A DNA stretch of 64,000 bases from Dendrobates tinctorius (taxonomy: Eukaryota), in contig NW_027361704.1 in assembly GCF_039654945.1 (NCBI RefSeq), positions 42,036,001 to 42,100,000 on the forward strand, given 5' to 3'. The notes under the pieces were generated by a model. It worked only from the letters and a program-made list of their open reading frames with translations. It made no database searches and had not been told where the DNA came from. The position numbers were made by a program, and so were the translations under genes. Positions 38,400 to 56,300 of this stretch are shown piece after piece; positions within the stretch are counted from its first letter, which is position 1, and the number at the start of each line of letters is the position of its first letter.

Positions 38400-39830
38400 T
38401 TAGGGAGGGACGACAGCCTGCAGTACCCTTATACCAAAAGAGAGGTCTGTGGAAGCACCCAAGTCTAGCCTAAAATGACTATAAATGGTGCTTGGAGAGG
38501 ACCAAGTAGCCGCCTTACATATCTGGTCAATGGAGACTTCTGATCTTTTGGCCCCCGAGATCGCCATGGCCCTGGTGGAATGCGCCCTCAGCTTCCCAGG
38601 TGGCGACCTGCCCTTTGAGGTGTATGCTATTGAAATCGCCTCTCTAATCCATCTGGCTAGTGTATTTTTCGACGTTCTACAACCTTTCCTAGGGCCTTGA
38701 TGGGAGACAAATAGGGCATTATCTTTCTTCCAGGGATCGGTGACTGCCAGATATTCTATGAGGCATCTCCTAACATCCAGGGTGTGTAGTTTCTCTTCCT
38801 TCTCGTTAGCTGGGTTAGGGAGGAAGGATGGGAGGACTATCTCCTGTGTCCTATGAAAGCTAGAAACTACCTTAGGTAAGTACGCTGGATCAGGTCTGAG
38901 TATTACCCTATCCTCTTTGAACTGTAAATAAGGAGGACGCCTAGATAATGCCTGGATATCGCTTACTCTGCGAGCTGATGTTAGAGCTACCAGGAAGGCT
39001 ATTTTGAGGGACAGGTTTTTTATGGAAGCCAATGAGATAGGTTCGAATGGGGTTTCCGTCATAGCAGTGAGGACTAGGTTCAAGTCCCACGGCATGAATC
39101 TATCCTTCACTATTGGTCTGGCTCTACCTGCCGCCTTAATGAACCTGCTGACCCAGTAATTACCAGCGATGTTGCAGCTAAAAAGGGCCCCCAAGGCTGA
39201 TACTTGTACTTTAAGGGTACTGGTAGAAAGCCCCATGTCCAGACCTTTCTGTAGAAACTCTAATATCTGAATTATAGGTGCTGAATCCCCAGCGACTACT
39301 CCTGAGTTTTGAAGGAATTTTTTCCAAATTCTAACATAAATTTTCGTGGTAATGATTTTTCTACTTTTAAGTAGGGTGTTAATTAGGTCTGGGGAGAAGC
39401 CTTTCTCTTCTAGCAGTGACCGTTCAAACTCCACGCCGTCAGATGTAGGCCAGCCAACTGAGGATGGAACACTGGGCCCTGGGATAGGAGATCCGGGATG
39501 TCCGGAAGAACCAAAGGATCGGATACCGACATGGTCCTGAGGCATGAGAACCATGCCCTCCTGGGCCAAAATGGAGCGATAACTATAACCCTTGCTCTGT
39601 CTTTTCTGATTTTCTTTATCACCAGGGGTATTAGAGACAGAGGAGGGAAGGCGTAGGCTAGCCTGAAGTCCCACTTTATCAGAAAGGCATCTACCGCCAG
39701 AGGATTCTCTCTGGGATTTAAGGAGCAGAATTGTCTCAATTTTTTGTTCTCCTTGGTGGCGAAGAGATCTACCTCTGGATGTCCCCACTTTTGTACAATC
39801 AGGTTGAATATGGAGGTGTTTAAGGACCAT
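38400..39830 (-). CDS. DIRS tyrosine recombinase
   Basis: LVALTSARRVSDIQAL (catalytic R), LDVRRCL, RAHSTRA (HxxR), CKAATWSSPSTIYSHFRL. The expected terminal Tyr appears as F here versus HYRL in element B, so it may be inactive. Confidence 0.9.
   Translation of the reverse strand: MVLKHLHIQPDCTKVGTSRGRSLRHQGEQKIETILLLKSQRESSGGRCLSDKVGLQASLRLPSSVSNTPGDKENQKRQSKGYSYRSILAQEGMVLMPQDHVGIRSFGSSGHPGSPIPGPSVPSSVGWPTSDGVEFERSLLEEKGFSPDLINTLLKSRKIITTKIYVRIWKKFLQNSGVVAGDSAPIIQILEFLQKGLDMGLSTSTLKVQVSALGALFSCNIAGNYWVSRFIKAAGRARPIVKDRFMPWDLNLVLTAMTETPFEPISLASIKNLSLKIAFLVALTSARRVSDIQALSRRPPYLQFKEDRVILRPDPAYLPKVVSSFHRTQEIVLPSFLPNPANEKEEKLHTLDVRRCLIEYLAVTDPWKKDNALFVSHQGPRKGCRTSKNTLARWIREAISIAYTSKGRSPPGKLRAHSTRAMAISGAKRSEVSIDQICKAATWSSPSTIYSHFRLDLGASTDLSFGIRVLQAVVPP
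39410..39790 (-). pseudogene. DIRS N6-adenine methyltransferase-like domain overlapping the YR ORF
   Basis: DAFLIKWDFRLAYAFPP...VIVIAPFWPRRAWF, the typical DIRS1 MTase-like domain after RNase H. Confidence 0.8.
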
Positions 39831-39855
39831 TCTCCTTGCTTTAGCTGATTGCGGC

Positions 39856-40308
39856 TTAAAAAGTCTGCCGTGATGTTGTCCTCCCTTTTATATGTAGAGC
39901 TGTTAAAGATAGAAAATGCTGCTCTGCTAGTTGGAACAACCGCTCTGCTACAATCATCAGGGGTCTGGAATGGGTCCCGCCTTGGTGATTGATATACGCC
40001 ACGGTGACCTGATTGTCGGAGAACACTCGCACGTGATGGCCCTGTAGATACACAAGGAGCTTTTTAGCCGCCTGTTCTACTGCTGTCAATTCTTTTAGGT
40101 TAGACGACATTCCTAACTGATGATGTTCCCATTGGTCCTGGACTAGCATTTCACCCATATGAGCCCCCCAACCGGAAGGGCTAGCATCTGTGGTGACTAT
40201 GCGGGTTGTGTTATACTCCCAGGGTACCCCTTTAGATAAATTATCCTTGTCTAGCCACCACTCTAGGGACTCCCTTGTGTTACGGGACAAGGTTAGCTGG
40301 CCCTCCAA
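39856..40308 (-). pseudogene. DIRS RNase H
   Basis: TTDASPSGWGAH, SSNLKELTAV, VFSDNQVTVAYINHQGGT; separated from the RT by a stop. Confidence 0.88.
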
Positions 40309-40374
40309 GTAACCCCCAAGGATTTTTTGATGTAATAAAACCTCGCTCTGTAGTTTCCTTGCATGAAACTGGGC

Positions 40375-41223
40375 CTACTGGACTGCCGGGATACAGGCCG
40401 AGAGAGAGCCTAGAAGGGACATGGCTTTCCTGAGGGACATGGTGGGGTTATTGGAGGCGTTCAGGACCTGGTAGTGGAGGCGAACAAGCTTCTCCGGAGG
40501 CAGACGGCATTCCTGTTTCTCAGAATCTAGGATTAGGCCCAAGAATTGTTGGACTCTCATCGGTTGCAACCGAGATTTTTTGATGTTCAGCAACCATCCT
40601 AACCGCTCTAGGGCAAACATTGCCCTTTGTAGCTGTTCCAAACAATGGTTCGCCATTTTGCCTACAATAAGAAAATCGTCCAGGTAGGGGACCACCAGAA
40701 TGTCAGATTCACGTAGATGGGCCATGACTTCCGCTATCACTTTAGTAAATACTCGGGGGGCGACTGCCACACCAAAGGGAAGGGCCGCATATTGGAAATG
40801 TCGAACTGACCCATCTAACTGAACTGCCACTCTGAGAAAATGCTGATGAGCTGCATGGATGGGTATATGGTAGTAGGCGTCTTTTAAATCTAACACCACC
40901 ATAAAGCAGTTTTGGAACAGCAATTTTATTGTGGACTTAATTGTTTCCATTTTAAACGGACGTATGACCAGAAACTTGTTGAGGGCCTTAAGGTTTATTA
41001 TAGTCCTAAAGGAGCTGTCTGGCTTGCGGACCAGGAACAGAGGGGAGTAGAAACCCGTCCCCCATTCTCCCTCTGGAACCTCTGTTAGGACTTTCTTGCC
41101 GCACAGGTCATGAACCTCAGCCTCCAGGGCAGCTTGTTCTGAAGTAGAAGACCTGAGTGGGGTGATTTTAAATCGATCATGGGGAACCCTAGAGAATTCT
41201 AGTCGCAGTCCCACAGCTATCAC
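40375..41223 (-). pseudogene. DIRS reverse transcriptase
   Basis: FYSPLFLVRK, DLKDAYYHIPI, LPFG, YLDD. Confidence 0.92.
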
Positions 41224-41497: not shown

Positions 41498-42782
41498 TCA
41501 TCCCCAGCTTTTTCTAATAATTCGTCCAGGACAGGGCCGAAAAGATACTCCCCCCTCGCAAGGAATGGAACAGAGACGGGACCGGGCCTGAATATCTCCC
41601 GGCCAGCACTTTAACCAGAGCGCTCTTCGCGCTGCATTAGATAGACCCGCGGCTCTAGCCGCCATCCTTGCAGAGTCTGCTGAAGCATCAGCTAAAAACG
41701 CAGCGGCATTCTGGATGATCGGCAGATTTTTTCGAATGGATGCTCTTGAGGCTCCGTCTTTTAGCTCGGAATACAGTTGATCTAGCCAGACCATCATGGA
41801 TCTGGCTGTACTGGTGGCAGCTATCGCTGGTCTTAGTGCGCCTGCTGACATCTCCCATGTTCCTTTTAGAAAAGAATCTGCTTTTTTATCTAGCGGATCT
41901 TTCAAGGAGGCCATATCGTCAAAGGGTATGGAGGATTTTTTGGACGCTTTGGCTACTGCTGCGTCTAGTTTCGGGGCCTTATCCCATCTGCTTACTACTG
42001 GGTCATCAAAGGGGTATCTCCGCTTGAAAGCTGGTGGCATGGTGCCCCTTTTTTCAGGTCTCTTCCATTCTCTGTCTATTAGGCTCTGGACTTTATCATT
42101 TAATGGAAAAGCCCTGCGTTTTCTGGGGTCTAGACCCCCGAACATTATGTCCTGTGCTGAGAGTTCCCGTTTTGTGTCCGCTACCCCCATGGTGGACCTT
42201 ATTGCTTTCACTAGTCTGTCCATTTGATCTAAGGGGAAGCAGAATCGGCTAGAGTCTTCATCCGAGGAAGATGACGAGGAGGCCGAGGAATTATCACCTT
42301 TCCTAGGGGTGACTCAGGCCTCCGAGCCTGAAACACTAGCCTCTCTTCTAGAAGGTTCCCCTTGAGATAAGACTTTCATCTCCGACCTGATTATCTCCCT
42401 CAGGCTTGAAGTGAAGTCAGGTGTCTCTTCCGCTACCTGCGTAAACGGGGGAGAGTATAAGGGCCTGACAATCTACCCCTGGACTCCCTGTCTCTATCAA
42501 CCCCTACCGTCTGTCGTATGCATGGCTGACATAACTTTTTAGGGTGGCCATCTGGTAGGGGGCAACTACAGAGGGCACATTCCCTGTGCTTCTGTTTTCC
42601 CGTAGCTTTCTTCCCCTGCGAAAAAACATAAGGGAACACTGCATCAGGGTACATTCACGGAGATCTCTTACCCATGCAGTTGAAGCAGGTACCAGATCAC
42701 GGAGGGAGGCAGGGGGATCCTTTAGTCTGGAGGAACTTCCGCGGCTTTGGTCGCTTGTTCGTCTGTTTCTTTTGCTGGCCAC
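41498..42782 (-). pseudogene. DIRS gag with an N-terminal CxxC...CxxC finger, apparently split by two short GT-AG introns
   Basis: Exon 42508-42615 encodes GKKATG...CALC...CQPCIRQT. Splicing out 42616-42671 and 42437-42507 puts it in frame with ORF 41498-42223, with one TGA at ~42315. Confidence 0.8.
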
Positions 42783-43929
42783 TCGTATGTGGTTTTGTTG
42801 TGGCCCGTTTCTGCGGGCGCTCCTGCGCCTCGTCCTGCTGGTCTATGGGGGCTTCCGTCGTATCCATTGCTGGGCCCTTCGGAAGCACCCCAGAAGCGTC
42901 CCCCCTGCCTTATATGGCCTCTTGGTGTCCGGATCAGCAGGGATCTGGCCATGGCACCACCCACCCGGGATTCTCCCGTGACCTCCCCCCCATGCTCCGG
43001 CCCCCCCACCTTACCCAGGCCGCCGCCCGCGACCCCCGGACAGGCGTGCACCCACGGCGCGCATCGGAAGCCGGCCGGCACCCGACTTCCTGTTTCGGCG
43101 TTCCCGGCTCCGCCCCTTCCGCCGCATCACTTCCGCCGCTCACCAGAGCTTTGCGGGAGCGCGCGCGAAGGAGCCGGCGCGGCGCCCCCTGCCCGGAATG
43201 CCTCCCAGCCGCGCGCGCGCCGCCATGACCGCCAACCAGGCGCCAACGTTGACCGGGAGGACCGGACCCGGGGGAGCGCACCAGGAGGGCCCGGGGCATA
43301 CCCGGTGCTGGCATTCTGGAGGCGGTGTCCACCGGACCCTCTGCTCCACCTGCTCCGTCCACTGCCGTTGTGACCTACCCAGCCCCACCGTGGCGCTTCC
43401 AGGGACCCCGCACTGACCGAGGTAGGAGACCCCCCCCGCTACCTGGGTCGGTCAGCCGGCCTGGGAATCCATGACAACTCCATGACGGACGATCTGTAGG
43501 GAGTCTTGTCCTCTAAGAACAGGAAACCAACTGATGCGTGGGAGAGGTGCCACCCTTTTGTATCTGTAGGTTTCCTGTTCCTAAAGGGCGGATCCCCTGT
43601 CTCAGGTGGTGCTGTCATGGACGACCGAATAAAGAGGCCTTAAATAATCACTCTAATCCTGGAAGTGGAGATATGAGAATAGGCAGTCCCGCCCAGTTCT
43701 TGTGGTGATTCCTAAAACCCTAACCCAATTTCCAGGCACATTAAAATAAAAAAAACAAATAAAAAAAACTCAGCACTAATGGTACTGGGGCCTGTTCTTC
43801 AGAGCTCACACCACCTCAGTGACATCTCCTAACCAAGACCTGTCCAGCTGCCACCTTACAATGGTTTTTCATTCAGTCCCACTGCCACAGGTCTATAACA
43901 TCTAGCTCTTCACCATGCAGTCTGCATTT

Positions 43930-44510: not shown

Positions 44511-45468
44511 CTACTACACTTACTAGGTGTCAATTACCCTATGACATTAACTATGATCATGGTCTGCACCTCCTTTTGGTTGCTCCTCCTTCCTGTTCTC
44601 ATGACCCAAACAATACATTGTAGTTGATATTTTAATGATTATTTGTTAATAAAGCTCTTGTTTTTACTTCACCCTGTGGTTTATAGCTTCTTCATTTTTT
44701 CCTCTCTGTTTAACAGAATACAAATGGCCTGCCTTTTCTTTGAGCTGGACATTAGTCATATAGTTCCTCATGGCTTATTGTCCATTATCCAGGCTCAGTC
44801 CTTCACGACCCTTATCCACATGTGCGCTTCTTGACAAATGATAAGGTTTTAATATTAGAGGTTAGGACCATCCCAAGCAGGGTCACCGTGACGTGGTTGG
44901 ATGGATTTTAACTTTATGTTTATTATAGTGCTTGAAAAAAACCACTATATTGGAATCCGAACGCTGCTAACTTATCATTATTCAGTTGATTTCCACAATT
45001 AATGCTGCCCGAACCGCTACACGCACAGACTCCGTTGAGGTGTCGTTTCGAAGCCAGCGTCCACGAGAGGTGTGCTAAGTAATTTTCGTGTCGATCGAAA
45101 TTTGTGGTTTTTGCGCAATTTGCGTTTGAAAAAACATTTTCCTCAATGCATTTCAATGGGAAACTAGATGTTTATTTCCTGAAGGACGTACAGATAGTGG
45201 TTTGAAATGGTGCCTGGGCTGCCCCTTTAAGAGAGACTTGCCTGCTGCTCCTGCAAGACTTCCAACTCAGGATCCGTTTTAACTGTGAGTGCCTCTCAGG
45301 GGCCACTTTGGCCTCAGGGTCTTATTTGGTGGGTGGGGCCCCTCAGGATCTGATTCCATGGCCTGGGCTCCTCAGGGCTTGAATTGTTGGTGGGGATCCC
45401 TCAGGGTCCGATTTTGTGAGTGGGGCCCCTCAGGGTCCGATTTTGTGGCCGGATCCCCTCAGGGTCTG

Positions 45469-45620
45469 ATTTGTTGGGCGGGACCACTGGGTCCAATTTG
45501 TTGGGCGGGACCACTGGGTCCAATTTGTTGGGCGGGACCACTGGGTCCAATTTGTTGGGCGGGACCACTGGGTCCAATTTGTTGGGCGGGACCACTGGGT
45601 CCAATTTGTTGGGCGGGACC
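45469..45620. repeat. 27-bp tandem repeat, ~5.5 copies
   Basis: TTGTTGGGCGGGACCACTGGGTCCAAT. Confidence 0.92.
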
Positions 45621-46218
45621 GATCAGCCTCCGATTTGGAGGCCGGGGTCGATCAGCCTCCGATTTGGAGGCCGGGGTCGATCAGCCTCCGATTTGGAGGC
45701 CGGGGTCGATCAGCCTCCGATTTGGAGGCCGGGGTCGATCAGCCTCCGATTTGGAGGCCGGGGTCGATCAGCCTCCGATTTGGAGGCCGGGGTCGATCAG
45801 CCTCCGATTTGGAGGCCGGGGTCGATCAGCCTCCGATTTGGAGGCCGGGGTCGATCAGCCTCCGATTTGGAGGCCGGGGTCGATCAGCCTCCGATTTGGA
45901 GGCCGGGGTCGATCAGCCTCCGATTTGGAGGCCGGGGTCGATCAGCCTCCGATTTGGAGGCCGGGGTCGATCAGCCTCCGATTTGGAGGCCGGGGTCGAT
46001 CAGCCTCCGATTTGGAGGCCGGGGTCGATCAGCCTCCGATTTGGAGGCCGGGGTCGATCAGCCTCCGATTTGGAGGCCGGGGTCGATCAGCCTCCGATTT
46101 GGAGGCCGGGGTCGATCAGCCTCCGATTTGGAGGCCGGGGTCGATCAGCCTCCGATTTGGAGGCCGGGGTCGATCAGCCTCCGATTTGGAGGCCGGGGTC
46201 GATCAGCCTCCGATTTGG
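45621..46218. repeat. Perfect 29-bp tandem repeat, ~20 copies, with an internal hairpin
   Basis: GATCAGCCTCCGATTTGGAGGCCGGGGTC; GCCTCC/GGAGGC stem in each unit. Confidence 0.97.
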
Positions 46219-46826
46219 CGTGTCGGCCCTTTAAGACTCATTTCGGTGCGCCGGCCCTTTAACAATCACTTTGGCGCGTCGGCCCTTTAAGAGCTAGTTT
46301 GGCTCACTGGGCTTCTTCTAAATCAACTTTGGCGGACATTCTCTCTCAGGGGCATGTGTCATGTGATGAAGCTATATTTGCATTAGTGCTGTGGTTTTCA
46401 CTTTAAGAGCTGATATTATGTGGCAGAAGCTCTGTCCTCGGGGCGTCATGTGACATTCGTAGGCGTTGGCATAGTAACTGGGTGTGCCTGCGCATATCAA
46501 TGAGCTTAACTGCCATTTCAATCGCCTCAGGGCACGTTTTGCCATTTCCCATTGAAAAGCATTGGAGACAATGCATTCTAATGACGGGAAAATAAATTTT
46601 CAAACTCAAATTGCGCAAAAACTAAAAATCCGATCGACATGAAAAATACTTAGCACACCTCTCATGGACGCTGGCTTCGAAACGACACCTCAACGGCGTC
46701 TGTGCGGGTAGCGGTTCGGGCCGCATTAATTGCGGAAATCAACTGGAAAATAAGAAGAATAAGTTAGCAGCGTTCGGATTACAATATAGTGGTTTTTTCA
46801 AACCACTATAAATATTGCCACAGAGA

Positions 46827-48313
46827 AAACATGCCCTGAGGCGATTGAAATGGCAGTTAAGCTCATTGATATGCGCAGGCACACCCTGTTACTATGCCAA
46901 CGCCTACGAACTATAGTATACATGACCCCCCCAGGACAGAGTTTCTGCCAGATAATTTCAGCTCTTAAAGCGAAACCCAAAGCACAAATGCAAATCTAGC
47001 TTCATCACATGACGCATGCCCCTGAGAGAGAATGTGTGCCAAAGTGGATTTAGAAGCCCAGTGAGCCAAACTGGCTCTTAAAGGGCTGACATGCCAAAGT
47101 GAGTCTTAAAGGGCCGGTGCACCGAAATGAGTCTTAAGAGGGCCAGTGCGCCACATCAAAAGCTGAGTGACCCCAGGCTCCAAATTGGAGGCTGAGCCAC
47201 CCTGGCCTCCAAATCGGACTCAGAGTGGCCCCGCTCACCAAATCTGACCCAGAGTAGCCCCGCCTACCAAATCGGACCCTGAAGGGCCACGCCCACCAAA
47301 TCAGACCCAGAGTGGCCCCACCCACCAAATCGGACCCTGAGGGGCCCTACCCACCAAATCATACCCACATTGGCCCCGCCCACCAAATCAGACCCAGAGT
47401 GGCCCCGCCCACCAAATCGGACCCTGAGGGGCCCCGCCCACCAAATCGGACCCTGAGGGGCCCCGCCCACCAAATCGGACCCTGAGGGGCCCCGCCCACC
47501 AAATCGGACCCTGAGGGGCCCCGCCCACCAAATCGGACCCTGAGGGGCCCCGCCCACAAAATCAGACCCTGAGGGGCCCCACCCACAAAATCAGACCCTG
47601 AGGGGCCCCACCCACAAAATCAGACCCCGAGGGGCCCCACACACAAAATCGAACCCTGAGGGGCCCCACACACAAAATCGAACCCTGAGGGGCCCCGGCC
47701 ACCAAATCATACCCAGATTGGCCCCGCCCACCAAATCGGACCCTGAAGGGCCACACCCACCAAATCAGACCCAGAGTGGCCCCGCCCACCAAATCGGACC
47801 CTGAGGGGTCCCACCCACAAAATCAGACCCTGAGGGGCCCCGGCCACAAAATCAGACCCTGAGGGGCCCCGGCCACAAAATCAGACCCTGAGGGGCCCCG
47901 GCCACAAAATCGGACCCCAAGGGGCCCCACACACAAAATCGGACCCTGAGGGACCCCACACACAAAATCGGACCCTGAGGGGCCCCACACACAAAATCGA
48001 ACCCTGAGGGGCCCCGGCCACAAAATCGGACCCTGAGGGGCCCCACCCACAAAATTGGACCCTGAGGGGCCCCACCCACAAAATCGGACCCTGAGGGATC
48101 CCGGCCACCAATTCAAGCCCTGAGGAGCCCTGGCCACAGAATTGGATCCTGAGGGGCCACACCCACCAAATCAGACCCTGAGGCCAAAGTGGCCCCTGAG
48201 AGGCACCCACAGTTAAAACGGATCCTGAGTTGAAAGTCTTGCAGGGGCAGCAGGCAAGTCTCTCTTAAAGGGGCAGCATTTCAAAGCACTATCTGTACTT
48301 CCTTCAGGAAATA
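46827..48313. mobile_element. TIR-less inverted copy of the interior of the 44924-46811 element, with a diverged 29-bp repeat array
   Basis: 46827-47140 matches the reverse complement of ~46230-46540; ~48080-48313 matches the reverse complement of ~45172-45420; CCACCAAATCGGACCCTGAGGGGCCCCGC variants at ~47200-48190. Confidence 0.75.
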
Positions 48314-48481: not shown

Positions 48482-50046
48482 CAGTTATGGCCCAACGTTT
48501 TGAGAATGACACAAATATTAATTTTTACAAAGTCTACTGCTTCATTTTTTCTAATGGCAATTTGCATATACTCCAGAATATTATAAAGAGTGATCAGCTT
48601 AACAGCAATTACTTGCAAAGTCAATATTTGCCTAGAAAACTAACTTTATCCACCAAAACACATTTCAACATCATTGCAGCCCTGCCTTAAAAGGACCAGC
48701 TAACATCATTTCAGTGATTGCTCCATTAACACAGGTGTGGGTGTTGATGAGGACAGGGCTGGAGATCAAGCTGTCATGATTAAGTAAGAATGACACCACT
48801 GGACACTTTAAAAAGGAGGCTGGTGCTTGGCATCATTGTTTCTCTTCTGTTAACCATGGTTATCTCTAAAGAAACACGTGCAGTCATCATTGCACTGCAC
48901 AAAAATGGCCTAACAGGGAAGAGTATCGCAGCTAGAAAGATTGCACCTCAGTCAACAATCTATCGCATCATCAAGAACTTCAAGGAGAGAGGTTCCCTTG
49001 TTGCCAAAAAGGCTCCAGGGCACCCAAGAAAGACCAGCAAGCGCCAGGACCGTCTCTTAAAAGTGTTTCAGCTGCGGATCGGGCTACCAGCAGTGCAGAG
49101 CTTGCTCAGGAATGGCAGCAGGCAGGTGTGGGTGCATCTGCACGCACTGTGAGGCGGAGACTCTTGAAGCAAGGCCTGGTCTCAAGGAGGGCAGCAAAGA
49201 AGCCACTTCTCTCCAGAAAAAACATCATGGACAGACTGATATTCTGCAAGAGGTACAGGGAGTGGACTGCTGAGGACTGGGGTAAAGTCATTTTCTCTGA
49301 TGAATCCCCTTTTCGATTGTTTGGGACATCTGGAAAACGGCTTATTCGGAGAAGACCAGGTGAGTGCTACCACCAGTCTTGTCTCATGCGAACTGTCAAG
49401 CATCCTGAAACCATTCATGTGTGGGGTTGCTTCTCAGCCAAGGGAATGGGCTCTCTCTCAGTCTTGCCTAAAAACACAGCCATGAATAAAGAATGGTACC
49501 AGAATGTCCTCGAAGAGCAACTTCTCCCAACCGTCCAAGAGCAGTTTGGCGATCAACAATGCCTTTTTCAACATGATGGAGCACCTTGCCATAAAGCAAA
49601 GGTGATAACTAAATGGCTCAGGGAACAAAACAGAGATTTTGGGACCATGGCCTGGAAACTCCCCAGATCTTAATCCCATTGAGAACTTGTGGTCAATCAT
49701 CAAGAGACGGGTGGACAAACAAAAACCTTCAAATTCAGACAAAATAAAAGCATTGATTTTGCAAGAATGGACTGCTATCAGTCAGGATTTGATCCAGAAG
49801 TTGATTGAGAGCATGCCAGGGAGAATTGCTGAGGTCCTGAAGAAGAAGGGTCAACACTGCAAATATTGACTTGCTGCATTAACTCATTCTAACTGTCAAT
49901 ATAACCTTTTGTTACTCATAATATGATTGCAATTATATTTCTGTATGTGATAAAAACATCTGACAAACACACATAAAAACCAGAGGGCAGCAGATCTTGT
50001 GAAAATATAATATTTGTGTCATTCTCAAAACTTTTGGCCATGACTG
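48482..50046 (+). mobile_element. Tc1/mariner transposon
   Basis: TA|CAGTTATGGCCCAACGTTTTGAGAATGACACAAAT ... ATTTGTGTCATTCTCAAAACTTTTGGCCATGACTG|TA. Confidence 0.92.
48857..49869 (+). pseudogene. Tc1 DD34E transposase with two frameshifts
   Basis: MVISKETRAVIIALH..., VIFSDES, FQHDGAPCH and [15 protein letters not shown] spread over three ORFs. Confidence 0.9.
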
Positions 50047-51826
50047 TACTTACATTTCTTATTTTCTGGAAGGAAGAGTAGCTCTGCAGCACAAACAGCT
50101 GATCTAACAACTGCTGTCATGGGTTCCGGAAAAACCGGCTACCGGTAAGTAACCATTGTGGTTTTCCCTTCACCCATGACAGCACCACCTGAGAGATTTT
50201 TGGAGATTCGAAACACCTTAGGGAGGGACCACCGCTTGCAGCACCCTTCTACCAAAGGTTGTCAGCAGAGGAGGATAGATTTAATCTATAGTGCTTAAAG
50301 AAGGTTGAAGGTGAGGCCCAGGTAGCGGCCTTACAAATCTGTTCGATCGATACCTTTGCTTTTTCGGCCCAGGAGGTCGCCACAGCTCTGGTGGAATGAG
50401 CCTTGATGCCGTCAGGAATCGGGATACCACTAGCTGTGTAGGCTACACTAATGACCTCCCTAATCCATCTAGCAATAGTCCCTTTTGAAACCCCATCGCC
50501 TTTCCTGGCACCCTGAAAAGCTACGAATAGGGACTGGGACCTCCTCCACTGGCTAGTCATAGATATGTATTCTACGAGAGCTCTCTTAACATCCAGATTA
50601 TGGAACTTTTCCTCCCCCAGATTTTTTGGGTTCTCGCAGAAAGATGGAAGGACAATTTCCTAGCCCCGATGGAAATCTGATGCTACCTTGGGCAGATAAG
50701 CGGGGTCTGTTCTTAACACTACCCTATCCTGAAAGACTTGCGTATAAGGTGGATTTACTGAGAGAGCCTGTAAATCGCTTATCCTGCGGGCTGACGTGAG
50801 GGCCACTAACAGGATTGTTTTTAGGGTCAGAAACTTTAGGGGTAGCTGATGTAATGGCTCATACGGATCTTTTGTAAGGGCCTCTAGCACTAGGTTTAAA
50901 TCCCAGGGGGCTATCCGGGGTATTGGGATAGGCCTAGCTCTATGGCAGGATTTAATAAACCTGGCTACCCATCTATTTGATGCCAATTTTCAGTTGTAGT
51001 GCAGACACCTGAACTTTAAGTGTGTTCACTGCTAACCCCATCTGCAACCCCGATTGTAAGAACTCCAGGATGGCATTAATCGGGGGATCTTTCCCTAACG
51101 CCCTACCTAAGAACTGCAGGAACTTATTCCATGTTCTGCCGTAGATGTTAGTCGTCACTGGTTTCCTACTCTTTAGCAGGGTGCCCACCAACCCGGGGGA
51201 GAACCCTCTATTCGTTAAAAGCGACCTTTCAAATTCCACGCCGTCAGATGGAATCCTTTGACCTGAGCGTGGAATATTGGACCTTGAGCTAGTAGGTCCG
51301 GGATTTCTGGTAGAACCCATGGATCGGAGAGGGACAACCTTCGTAGCAGAGCAAACCAGGGCCTTTTTGGCCAAAATGGAGCTATTAGAATCACCCTGGC
51401 CTGATCGTTTCTGATTTTTCTGACAACTGTTGGGATCAGAGCCACTGGGGGGGAATGCATAAGCTAGCCTGAAGTTCCACTGGATGTGCAATGAGTCCAC
51501 TGCCCATGGATTTTCTCTCGGGTTTAGAGAGCAGAACCTTTCTGTTTGCCTGTTGTGTTTGTTGGCAAAGAGGTCTATCACCGGTTAACCCCAAAGCTGA
51601 GTTATTTTTTGAAAAATGGACCGGTTTAGCGCCCATTCCCCCTGCTTCAGGGTATTGCGACTCAAGAAGTCTGCCTCTATGTTTTCTGCCCCTTTTACTG
51701 TATATGTAAGACTGTCAAGGAGTGTAGGTGTTCTTCTGCTCTGCTCAGAATGTCTGTCGCCGCTTCCATTAAGGAGTGTGATCTTGTCCCTCCTTGGTGG
51801 TTGATGTATGCCACTACTACCTTGTT

Positions 51827-52176
51827 AAGATGAGGATGAATGAACTCATGGAGATCAACATCCAACACTGCGGAGACACCATCACGTGTTTCTCAACGCA
51901 GTGATTCTAGAGCACTGCCCCATCCCTTATGGGAAATATGCAAAACATGCACAGTCTTTTACTAGGCATTGCTCCTACCAGCCAGTTTCCTACTCCACAC
52001 TGATGAGGGGCAATACCCCGAAACAGCTGTCTGTGGATGGATACCATGTTTTGGCATAGGTGGTTTCCTTCATAGGAGACTGCCCTTCCCGTGGTTGTTC
52101 CTTCCCGGGGAAAGACCTGGCTGGTCATTGCTTGCGTTGAGAAACATGTGATGGTGTCTCCGCGGCTTCTGTTTTG
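51827..52176 (+). mobile_element. 350-bp hammerhead-ribozyme-bearing retroelement (retrozyme-like) with a 15-bp TSD
   Basis: TSD CACTACTACCTTGTT at 51812-51826 and 52177-52191. Removing the insert restores DIRS RNase H SDNKVVVAYINHQGGTRS. Confidence 0.9.
51994..52037 (+). ncRNA. Type I hammerhead ribozyme, predicted cleavage after GUC at 52031
   Basis: Stem I UCCACA/UGUGGA, core CUGAUGA, stem II GGGG-CAAUA-CCCC, GAAA, minimal stem III with palindromic ACAGCUGU, then GUC. Confidence 0.9.
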
Positions 52177-52455
52177 CACTACTACCTTGTTGTCTGACAT
52201 GATGCGTACATTTCGACCCTGGAGTAGCGGAATGAAATGATTTAGGGCCTTGCTCACTGCCCACAGTTCTCTCAGGTTGGAGGATGCTTCCCCTTCTTGA
52301 CGCGTCCAGGAACCCTGACCTATGATGCCCCTTAGGTGTGCCAAACGGAAGAGCCCTGAACTGAAAGTGCCTTAGCGTGCCTTGAATATAAAGTGCTATC
52401 CTCAAGTATTTCTGGTAATCTGGGTGGATAGGGATGTGATAATACGCATCCTTTA

Positions 52456-53392
52456 GGCTAAGTGCACACGTACCGGAACTCTTGCGGAAATTACCGCGAG
52501 AATTCCGGAATTCCAGTCCGCGGGAAATTCGCATTTTAAATTCCCGCGATTTTCCCGCGGAAAAACTAGCATTTTGCAAGCGTAATTAGCTTGCAAAATG
52601 CTAGCGTTTTCCAAGCGATCTGTGGCATCGCTTGGAGAACTGATTGACAGGTTGGTCACACTCGTCAAACAATGTTTGACGAGTGTGACCAACTTTTTAC
52701 TACTGAGGCTGCCTATGCGGCATCAGTAGTAAAAGATAGTATGTAAAAAAAAAAAAACGGTGTTATTCTCACCCTCCAACGTCCCGCGCATCCGTTCCCA
52801 GTAATCCTTTGCGAAAATGCCCGCGATGACGTCAGTTCTCGCGGGATCGCGACGTCTCGCGGTTATTCGCGATGACGTCGCGCGAATGACCGCGAGACTT
52901 TGCGATCCCGCGAGAAGGGACGTCATCGCGAGCATTTTCGCAAAGGACTACTGGGAACAAGAGTGTGAAGAGAAGCGGGAAGGCTGTGCGGGACGTCGGA
53001 GGGTGAGAATAACAATATTTTTATTTTAAATTCAATTTTTTACAGGGATATGGTACCCAAAGCCCGGAGGACAGTCTTCTCTCCTCCGGACCATGGGTAC
53101 CATCCGCAATTGTTCTGCTTACTTTCCGCATGGTGTACACAGCCACATGTGGGAAATAAGCGGAACAATGCATTCCTATGGGTGCGGGATGGCCGCGATT
53201 CCGCAAATCAATGAGCATGCTGCGGTTTTTACCGCGAAGCGATTCCGCCGCGGTAAAAACCGCAGCATTAGCACAGCATTGCAGAATCCAATAGGAATGC
53301 ATGGGATGCTTATTTTTCACGTTTTCGTGGCAAAATCGCGCGGTTAAAACCGCTGCGGAAACGCGAAAAAAACGCCACGTGTGAACTCAGCC
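52456..53392. mobile_element. Harbinger-type MITE inserted in the element B RT
   Basis: TTA|GGCTAAGTGCACACGT...ACGTGTGAACTCAGCC|TTA; removal restores V-D-L-K-D-A. Confidence 0.88.
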
Positions 53393-56300
53393 TTAAATCG
53401 ACCATGGCCATGAAGCAATCTTGGTGTAGCAGCTTCACCGCCGTAGTTACTGATTCCATCTTGAAGGTCGAGTTCCTTATCCATAGATTGAGCCGTTTGA
53501 GATTTATGATTGTCCTGAAAGTTTGATCGGGTTTTTTTTATCAGAAAAAGGGGTGAATAAAACCCCTTCCCTTCCTGTAGGCGTGGTACCTCGGAGAGTA
53601 CCCGCTTGTCTATCAGGCTCAGGATCTCTGTTTCTAAGGCCACCTGCTCTTCGGTCACCTTCCTGATGGGTGTGATGACGACCACGGATTTTGGCTGACG
53701 GATGAAGGGAATTTTCAGGCCTTCTGTCAGGATGGTTAGGATCCAGGCGTTGGAGGAGATCATCTCCCAGGTTTGGAAAAAGAGTGCCAATCTCCCCCCC
53801 ACTGGAATACTGGCGTCACTGTGGCGACTTTTTTGAGGTGGAGGTACCTCCACCAAACATAAATCCCGATTCTTTTTTTCTTTTATCCTCCCATCTTCTC
53901 CTGTCAGCGGGAGGGCGCCCCCTATTGAATCTCCCCCTCCGAAAGGGCTGTCTCCTCTGATCCATAGGGAATCTGGGGAAGCCTTTTTTCTTATCGCCTG
54001 CTTTCTCCAGTATATCGTCCAAGTTCTTGCCGAACAAGAATCGACCGTCGCAGGGGAGAGAGCATAATTTGGCCTTGGACTGGAGGTCACCCGGACAGCC
54101 CTTAAGCCATAACGCGCGTCTAGCAGCATTTGATAGTGATGCTGCCCTGGCTGTCATCCGCATAGAGTCCGCCGAGGTATCGGCCAAAAAAGCTGCTGCC
54201 CCGTGCAAGAGATACATCTCCGATAAGATTTTCTCTCTTGGGACCCTTGAAGCCAGCTTTTCTTCTAACTGCTGCAGCCAGATCATGAGGGAGCATGCCG
54301 TACAAGTACCCGCTATTGCCGGCTTTAGTCCTCCTGCTGTCGCTTCCCATGCGTGCCTCAAATATGAGTCCGCCTTTTTGTCTAGTGGGTCTCTAAGAAC
54401 CCCTGCGTCTTCCAGGGGCAGGGCCGACCTTTTGGAGGATCTGGACACCGCTGCATCTATTTTGGGGATTTTGTCCCATATCTCTGCATCCTTATGCTTT
54501 TGAAAGTGGATGGAAGGGCCCCCGATTTTTCGGGCTTTTTCCACTCCTTCTCAATAAGTGCCTGGATCTTCTCGTTTACCGGAAAGGTCCGTTTTTTCCT
54601 CTCCTGAAGCCCCCCAAACATAACATCCTCTAGGGTTTTAGCCGCCTTTTCTTCCTGTAGGCCCATTGTAGCTCTAATGGCCTTTAGGAGGGCGTCTGTG
54701 TCTTCTACAGGGAAACATGGTTTACCCCCCATGTCGCTGTCTGAGGAGTCTGAGGAGGATGATTTTTCCGCCTGAGATGACATTGACGCGGAATCCGAGG
54801 GGGAACTAGGGGGATCCTTCCTGTTTTTTTTCTCTTTTTTCAATAGGGACTTAATTGAGCCTTCCATTTCTGACCTTAGGGCAGATATCAGATTGGCTGC
54901 GAAACTAGGCGCTTCCTCCGCCATAGTCCGCTGAATGCACGCAGCACAGAGATCTTTTTGCCAATCTCTTGCTAGGGGAGATTTACATATAGCACAATCC
55001 CTATTGTTCTTCTTGCTTCCCGCTTTCCTAGGCCTTTCCTACAGGGTGAAGCATACAACAGAAGCCCTTTAACATATGCTAACATTCACGAAGATCACTC
55101 ACCTCCCGAAATCAAGGGTACCGGACTCGGAGGCTGCGTCGGGGCACGTGACCTGCGTTCTTTGGATCTTGCTGAATCCCCCGACCTGCGGCTGGGGCGA
55201 CTGCTGCTGGAATGGCTTCCATGCTTTCTGCCAGAGGGCTGAGAGGGAGGCAGGGACGCTGAACGTTCCTGCTCTGACTCCATGTTGCACCACCGTCTGC
55301 TGCCGCCTTCTCTTTAAATACCATGCCTCCGCTCAGGTGAGCGTCTCTCCCCTCCCCCCTGCGACCGCCGGCCGCCTTTTCAAGAAGCCGGCCGGCGTCG
55401 CACCCGGCGCCATTAAACCGTCGCCCTTCTCTGACGTCAGCCGGCGCACCCAGCATGCAATGCGCCGCTGACGTCAGCGGCCGGAAGAAGCCAGCGTCTC
55501 TCCCCTGCTATGGGGATCGAGATGCGGTGTGCGCGAGGGGAGGGCGGCGCGGTGGGGGATCCCACCGACGCCCGCACGAACCCGGAACCCCAGAGGGCCC
55601 GGGGACTGCACATCCAGCACCCGACGGCCGGCGCTGCAGGTGAGACACCTGTTCTTCCTGCGCCGGGACGGGGCTGGGTCCATTTCCTTCGCCCATGACA
55701 GGCACCGCCAACAGTGGGGTTCCTTCCAGGACAGGAACCCAACTGAAGCGGGGGAGAGGTGCCGCCCCTTATATCTCAGTAGGTTCCTGTCCTGGCGGGG
55801 CGGATCCCTCTCTCAGGTGGTGCTGTCATGGGTGAAGGGAAAATAAAGATATTTACGAGCATGGATCGAGATGGAGATTTTTCAACAGTACTCCGTTTTG
55901 TCTATTTTTGTACCTTAACCCCATTTATTTTGGCTGTAATACTAATCAGCCCACATACCGGAGTGACATCATTTCTACAAAAACTATATTTTCCCTCTTT
56001 CTACTGAATATTAAAATATTAATGCATTTTTTACAAGATTTTCAATGCTGATCCTATCAGTTTCACCATCTGTTTATAGCCCTAATCCAGACAATATCAT
56101 CTGGGTCAAAACTATGAAATGATGTAATTTGCAGCATCCAAACTTTCAGCTGACATCAGAAAGAGGGATGATTTCCTGTCAAGATCCCATTCACTTTCTG
56201 AAATCCATTCATTACATCCAGTCCTAGAAGCGTCTACACCAAAACACAATCATTCTTCAATTTACAATTCCCCTCTATCCAGCAGAACGGCCCTGCTTAC

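Follow-up and report, generated by a model that had tools for sequence, protein, structure and literature searches.

How can a retrotransposon gene carry introns, when retroelements are copied through RNA and are expected to shed them? The question is raised by a locus on the minus strand of a 64,000-nucleotide stretch of the Dendrobates tinctorius genome (contig NW_027361704.1; hereafter the window), where an original prediction made from the letters alone had placed two GT-AG introns inside the gag gene of a DIRS retrotransposon and had found one of them missing from a second such element nearby. The proposed coordinates, lengths and GT..AG ends, the 108-nt exon encoding a C4 finger and the uninterrupted junction in the second element could all be reproduced from the sequence. 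Comparison across families of frog DIRS elements indicates, moreover, that both segments behave as spliceosomal introns in ORF1 (gag), and they are probably real introns. We consider it likely that the locus holds a decayed DIRS element in which two ordinary GT-AG introns interrupt the first gene, such that spliced RNA is translated and unspliced RNA is copied.

A decayed DIRS element with an interrupted first gene

The minus strand between positions 38400 and 43400 is occupied by a DIRS retrotransposon (element A), the first gene of which is gag (Table 1). Its assignment to this order is based on the reverse transcriptase (RT) and RNase H domains together with a gag-like ORF1 carrying a LAP2alpha-like domain (PF11560). 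The Pfam matches are not those of a Penelope-like RT with a GIY-YIG nuclease, and no DDE integrase was seen among them. The LAP2alpha-like domain is detected with E = 1.5e-14 in element A and 1.2e-13 in the second element (B), and has been found in all Xenopus DIRS families (PMC9210276). The gag of element A shares 69% identity with DIRS gag proteins from two poison frogs, Ranitomeya imitator and D. tinctorius, and tblastn searches with annotated frog proteins locate only two gag copies in the window, those of A and B. The pol region of element A is broken into several ORFs (38400..41223, minus strand).

Table 1. Positions of the exons, introns and domains of DIRS elements A and B in the window (a slash marks an exon–intron boundary)
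Feature	Position	Strand	Remarks
A, exon 1	42693..42867	-	ATG at 42867-42865; basic, Ser-rich N-terminus; frame break near 42761 in copy A
A, intron 1 (by reading frames)	42616..42692	-	77 nt; CTG/GTACCT ... TTTTTTCGCAG/GGG; same donor/acceptor layout in 10 families or copies
A, second donor-like motif	42651..42672	-	GGTAAGAGATCTCCGTGAATGT; inside intron 1; originally predicted donor GT at 42671, 21 nt past first donor
A, exon 2	42508..42615	-	108 nt; no ATG; starts and ends in phase 0; basic stretch and C4 finger CALC-x12-CQPC (CxxC-x12-CxxC)
A, intron 2	42437..42507	-	71 nt; ACG/GTAGGG ... CCCTTATACTCTCCCCCGTTTACGCAG/GTA; GTAGGG...CGTTTACGCAG (GTAGGG..CGCAG); tblastn match breaks exactly here
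A, exon 3	41498..42436	-	Rest of ORF1; LAP2alpha-like gag domain (PF11560); starts VAEETPDF
A, RT	40375-41223	-	Pfam RVT_1, E = 1.5e-18
A, RNase H	39856-40308	-	Pfam RT_RNaseH, E = 2.1e-07
A, tyrosine-recombinase-like ORF	38400-39830	-	476 aa; Phage_integrase E = 0.0016, 18.7 bits, under the Pfam cut-off of 27.1 bits
B, exon 1	55122..55283	-	54 codons from ATG 55283; phase 0 end at CCG/GTACCC
B, intron 1	55039..55121	-	83 nt; GTACCC...CCCTGTAG; second donor-like motif at 55103-55082, junction out of frame with that donor
B, finger exon continuous with gag	54457..55038	-	No intron 2; ...CAACIQRT MAEEAP... uninterrupted at 54939-54907

The exons were translated and searched one by one. In copy A, the initiating ATG of exon 1 appears to be out of phase with the end of the exon because of a private 2-nt length difference near position 42761, behind which other copies differ in length. 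When the 2-nt difference of the other copies is applied, the ATG frame reaches the boundary at 42693/42692 in phase 0. Exon 3 is in frame with the gag ORF at 41498-42223 except for one TGA (42316-42314), which had been explained as a decayed CGA. That explanation fails, as the related copies differ at the middle letter, 42315; the stop codon is private to copy A. With its exon 1 frame break, its exon 3 TGA and its fragmented pol, this copy is dead.

Exon 2 bears a weak likeness to zinc ribbons, all matches to which lie below the Pfam threshold. Its dN/dS value is roughly 0.11 in comparison with the closest R. imitator family, for which dS is saturated, and by this measure the exon is under strong purifying selection. 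An exon that lacks an ATG and yet shows such a value has to be connected to exon 1 through splicing.

Element B (about 50200-55500) is a second DIRS element of a different family, the aligned 5′ regions of A and B averaging 71% column identity. A frame shift near 54500 divides its gag (54457-54924 and 53816-54544), and its RNase H region is interrupted (51827-52176). A word search with the finger and gag ORF of B returned no match. In families that lack intron 2, a methionine can lie exactly at the boundary between finger and gag, as in B (T/MAEE), in a family from Engystomops pustulosus (L012; I/MAEE) and in the Logan contig L006 (V/MEES).

Reading frames point to an upstream donor for intron 1

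Intron 1 was compared among elements A and B, two Ranitomeya variabilis sequences (L001 and L002), three from R. imitator (L003, L005 and L016), one further D. tinctorius sequence (L004), the E. pustulosus sequence and one Logan contig (L011). These 10 families or copies share one layout: CG/GTAYY, a spacer of 13–26 nt, GGTRAG, a branch-like TGAY, a pyrimidine tract and YAG/GG. In element A, the branch-like CTGAT is located at 42647-42643 and is followed by the pyrimidine tract. All frog DIRS families examined contain intron 1, and the Logan contigs L006-L011, whose origin from RNA or DNA is not recorded, carry either intron 1 or a degraded finger.

This layout offers two candidate donors. The original prediction had used the second of these, giving an intron of 56 nt at 42671-42616 (GTAAGA...TTTTTTCGCAG; GTAAGA..CGCAG). 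Its acceptor is upheld by the comparison, whereas the reading frames favour GTACCT at 42692 and a length of 77 nt. An ATG-initiated ORF of 16–84 codons ends at the first donor in phase 0 in all eight unbroken families, while at the second donor such an ORF is in phase in three of the eight and missing in five. The downstream GT is in frame only in the families of A and L003, which have a 21-nt spacer without a stop codon. Since exon 1 ends at the first donor in phase 0, only splicing from that site continues its frame into the finger exon. Measured from the first donor, intron 1 spans 77–99 nt in the families compared, and its length modulo 3 is not constant. Reading through it leads to stop codons, often the TGA within GGTRAGTGA.

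Three NCBI gene models (P0004, P0006 and P0012) take exactly the first donor and the acceptor. These models are possibly partly ab initio and therefore are not counted as RNA evidence. A word search with the N-terminus of P0006 retrieved P0006 alone. Overall, the frames point to 42692 as the coding donor of intron 1, 21 nt upstream of the site originally proposed.

The first donor (GTACC or GTATT) matches the U1 consensus poorly, with neither A at +4 nor G at +5, and a near-perfect donor follows 13–26 nt downstream. The splicing machinery would normally favour the downstream site, which counts against use of the first donor. The weak and strong donors in tandem form a compact natural case for the study of splice-site choice.

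Presence and exact absence of intron 2

In tblastn searches, element A is matched by annotated frog proteins in two pieces that break exactly at 42505/42436, and element B in one piece. The intervening segment is not private to copy A: contigs from four D. tinctorius runs or studies contain it together with both borders, and variants that have diverged retain its AG. One contig of run X8, a single observation, joins 42439 to 42502, skipping 62 nt of intron 2 and leaving 9 nt, which would be an in-frame remnant.

In the closest family, from R. imitator, four copies (L003, L013, L014 and L015) have an insert of 77 nt (GTGAGG..CCCCTAG) at the codon boundary where A has intron 2. Three of these copies (L003, L013 and L014) are situated on three chromosomes and are 99.6–99.8% identical over 800 nt. 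In the R. imitator copies, the three exons are all open, and read-through of the insert reaches stop codons after nine codons. Such near-identical dispersed copies with both introns indicate that the family has transposed recently and that the introns were kept. The NCBI models of this family begin gag at a downstream methionine and do not splice intron 2.

The interiors of the A and L003 introns resemble each other no better than shuffled sequences do (P = 0.10 and 0.57), an outcome expected at a divergence of roughly one substitution per site. The homology of intron 2 is consequently judged by position, phase and signals only. Both sequences retain the GT, the AG, a pyrimidine tract and a branch-like CTTAT or CCTAT. 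Exon 3, from the acceptor to its first methionine, is open and conserved, and begins with VAEE.

The D. tinctorius sequence L004 is without intron 2 to the base, and its frame is intact. The intron is also absent from all other families examined (B, L001, L002, L005, L011, L012 and L016), and is thus limited to one lineage comprising A and the young R. imitator family. A tree of 4 kb of DNA has the topology (A,(L003,L004)), with support of 98/99 and 100/100, and a clade of A with L003 is rejected (p-AU 2.6e-9). The precise difference in the presence of intron 2 is supported by these comparisons. The families of A and B, from which it was first deduced, are distant from each other; the pair that is informative consists of R. 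imitator, with the intron, and its D. tinctorius sister lineage, without it. In the simplest history consistent with this tree, intron 2 was gained once, on the stem of the clade, and was later removed in a single precise loss. A history in which it was gained twice, independently, at one codon boundary would require an equal number of steps, but is much less plausible.

Evidence for splicing and alternative explanations

GT/AG ends, a pyrimidine tract and a branch-like site are found in both introns of element A, in intron 1 of the 10 families or copies and in intron 2 of the four R. imitator copies. As is characteristic of U2-type introns, removal of the segments restores one frame and their retention breaks it, as judged from matching phases and from exons translated separately. 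Likewise, position and signals are conserved while the interior of intron 2 drifts. Twenty sequencing runs matched the locus, all in the form of Logan contigs and none on record as RNA; such contigs drop rare forms and show presence rather than absence. In the contigs of four runs (RNA or DNA not recorded), many short contigs carry the introns, and none contains a spliced joint at 42436/42508, 42615/42672 or 42615/42693. The case for splicing is thus comparative.

A rival to this intron 1 boundary is that splicing proceeds from GTAAGA at 42671, alone or mainly, with the upstream GTACC being coding sequence or a minor site. This downstream donor is near the U1 consensus, is conserved in seven dendrobatid families along with the 15 nt that follow, and yields an open junction in A and L003. 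However, the distances between the two donors are 21, 19, 22, 23, 21, 19, 22, 26 and 13 nt, and so are not constant modulo 3, and even a variant copy of family A has a spacer of 23 nt rather than 21 nt (with a loose contig end at 42673). Together with the in-phase ORFs missing from five of eight families, this variation indicates that the spacer does not evolve as coding sequence, and we regard the use of GTAAGA as the main donor as unlikely.

For intron 2, the 71-nt segment could instead be an old insertion that is never spliced, so that ORF1 would yield a small finger protein and, separately, a gag translated from its own downstream ATG. The R. imitator gene models, which start past the insert, and the missing spliced contig in the four runs agree with this arrangement. 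So does the methionine often seen at the boundary in families without intron 2, from which a finger-less gag might also start internally. An unspliced insertion does not account, however, for the preservation of both splice ends, the pyrimidine tract and CTTAT/CCTAT in a segment whose interior has been randomized at about one substitution per site, nor for the open and conserved stretch that precedes the first methionine of exon 3. The sister lineage that lacks the insert exactly, with its frame intact, also argues against it; overall, this explanation is quite improbable. A copy as plainly dead as A would also suit an origin of the apparent introns by chance, from random GT..AG pairs and from indels accumulated in a pseudogene, but the same architecture occurs in intact, near-identical young copies of another species and in about ten families, so that coincidence is scarcely credible.

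A possible division between message and template

If both segments are spliced as proposed, the full-length unspliced transcript would serve as the template for reverse transcription, and the spliced fraction would be the message for the complete ORF1 protein, in which a basic N-terminus and a C4 finger precede a LAP2alpha-like gag. Without splicing, the first ORF would end just inside intron 1. New copies would keep both introns because the RNA that is reverse transcribed would be unspliced. The dispersed near-identical copies that keep their introns fit such a scheme, at the level of genomic sequence, with an unspliced template and a spliced message for the full protein. The exact loss of intron 2 in the D. 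tinctorius sister lineage would most simply have come about through the copying of an RNA that had already been spliced there.

This model would have several implications. The copied RNA would be kept apart from the translated RNA, and the introns would provide a natural marker of the RNA species that is reverse transcribed, with intron 1 kept throughout and intron 2 lost a single time. Such elements would also be mis-annotated by gene finders and repeat libraries designed for an uninterrupted ORF1, as in the R. imitator models that start gag at an internal methionine.

A conserved second donor-like motif inside intron 1

A 22-nt motif, GGTRAGWGAYCTNCGTGAAWGT, has two matches in the window (42651-42672 and 55082-55103, both on the minus strand), compared with 0 expected, and is kept in seven dendrobatid families, namely A, B and five others. 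It consists of a near-perfect donor and a conserved 15-nt tail, such that GGTRAG is followed by GAYCTNCGTGAAWGT in the dendrobatid families, and is usually out of frame for gag. No conserved RNA fold was detected in intron 1 (−0.49 kcal/mol, no compensatory pairs), and a hairpin that hides the second donor was rejected as a candidate on this basis. Rfam searches at the gathering threshold gave no matches across 38–56 kb.

The second U1-like site could act as an alternative donor that gives a truncated product, as a U1 binding site through which the full-length RNA is protected, or as part of a signal present only in unspliced RNA. In retroviruses, the packaging signal resides downstream of the major splice donor. 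The intron 1 motif is a possible counterpart by analogy only, and we know of no packaging signal for DIRS elements. A signal of this type within intron 1 would explain why this intron has never been lost in any family. More tentatively, frog DIRS elements may possess an obligatory intron that separates message from genomic RNA, in which the 15-nt motif would be either an unspliced-only signal for packaging or for selection for reverse transcription, or a protective U1 site, and to which intron 2 would have been added de novo and once lost, when a partly spliced RNA was copied; this fuller proposal is possible but doubtful.

Relation to other intron-bearing and spliced retroelements

Intron retention has been described as ‘highly unusual among retroelements’ and as typical of Penelope-like elements (PMC8557442), whose introns survive retrotransposition (Arkhipova et al. 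2003, as cited in PMC8557442). As in those elements, the genomic copies of the frog DIRS families retain probable spliceosomal introns through rounds of copying. The likeness is confined to the keeping of introns: the RT of Penelope-like elements is telomerase-like and is accompanied by a GIY-YIG nuclease, and the intron studied best in them is located in the 5′ UTR, whereas the frog element is a DIRS element with introns in the coding sequence of ORF1. If the model presented above is correct, DIRS elements would constitute a second, unrelated order that keeps small introns, in this case in a capsid-like gene.

Drosophila copia produces a subgenomic GAG mRNA by alternative splicing. The same strategy is used by the Ty1/Copia element EVD of Arabidopsis, and in a plant Copia element a U1 site has been shown to protect the full-length RNA (PMC5580714). 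The proposed frog system would share with these the division into a spliced RNA for structural protein and an unspliced RNA as genome, and perhaps a role for U1 at the donor beyond splicing. However, the Copia intron removes part of pol, so that gag is readable on both RNAs, whereas the two tiny introns of frog DIRS elements (71–99 nt) lie within gag, and unspliced RNA therefore cannot encode the full protein.

The frog elements otherwise resemble the DIRS elements described from Xenopus (PMC9210276) and in an overview (PMC3266345), with a LAP2alpha gag and RT/RNase H; those described elements also have a tyrosine recombinase, for which element A has a candidate ORF with a sub-threshold match. 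The words ‘intron’ and ‘splic’ are absent from both articles. A literature search found no description of introns in the gag of vertebrate DIRS elements; older DIRS papers (Goodwin and Poulter 2001) lay outside its scope, and an earlier mention there is possible.

Other features of the window and its annotation

One R. imitator gene model, P0013, begins with an N-terminus like that of DIRS exon 1 and continues into glycosyl hydrolase family 3 domains. It may be an artefact of annotation, or a chimeric gene model that joins a DIRS 5′ exon by splicing to a host gene.

Between the two DIRS elements, the window contains two long tandem arrays of 29-nt units (45312-46303 and 47209-48183). The first includes 20.7 perfect copies at 45620-46218, and the second comprises 33.6 copies at 47209-48183. 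The unit of the second array reads like the reverse complement of that of the first, and the arrays are thus inverted relative to each other. The long ‘ORFs’ in several frames at 45289-46290 are a consequence of the tandem arrays. A remnant of a Tc1/mariner-type transposase (HTH_Tnp_Tc3_2 and DDE_3) extends over two frames at 49128-49869 on the plus strand.
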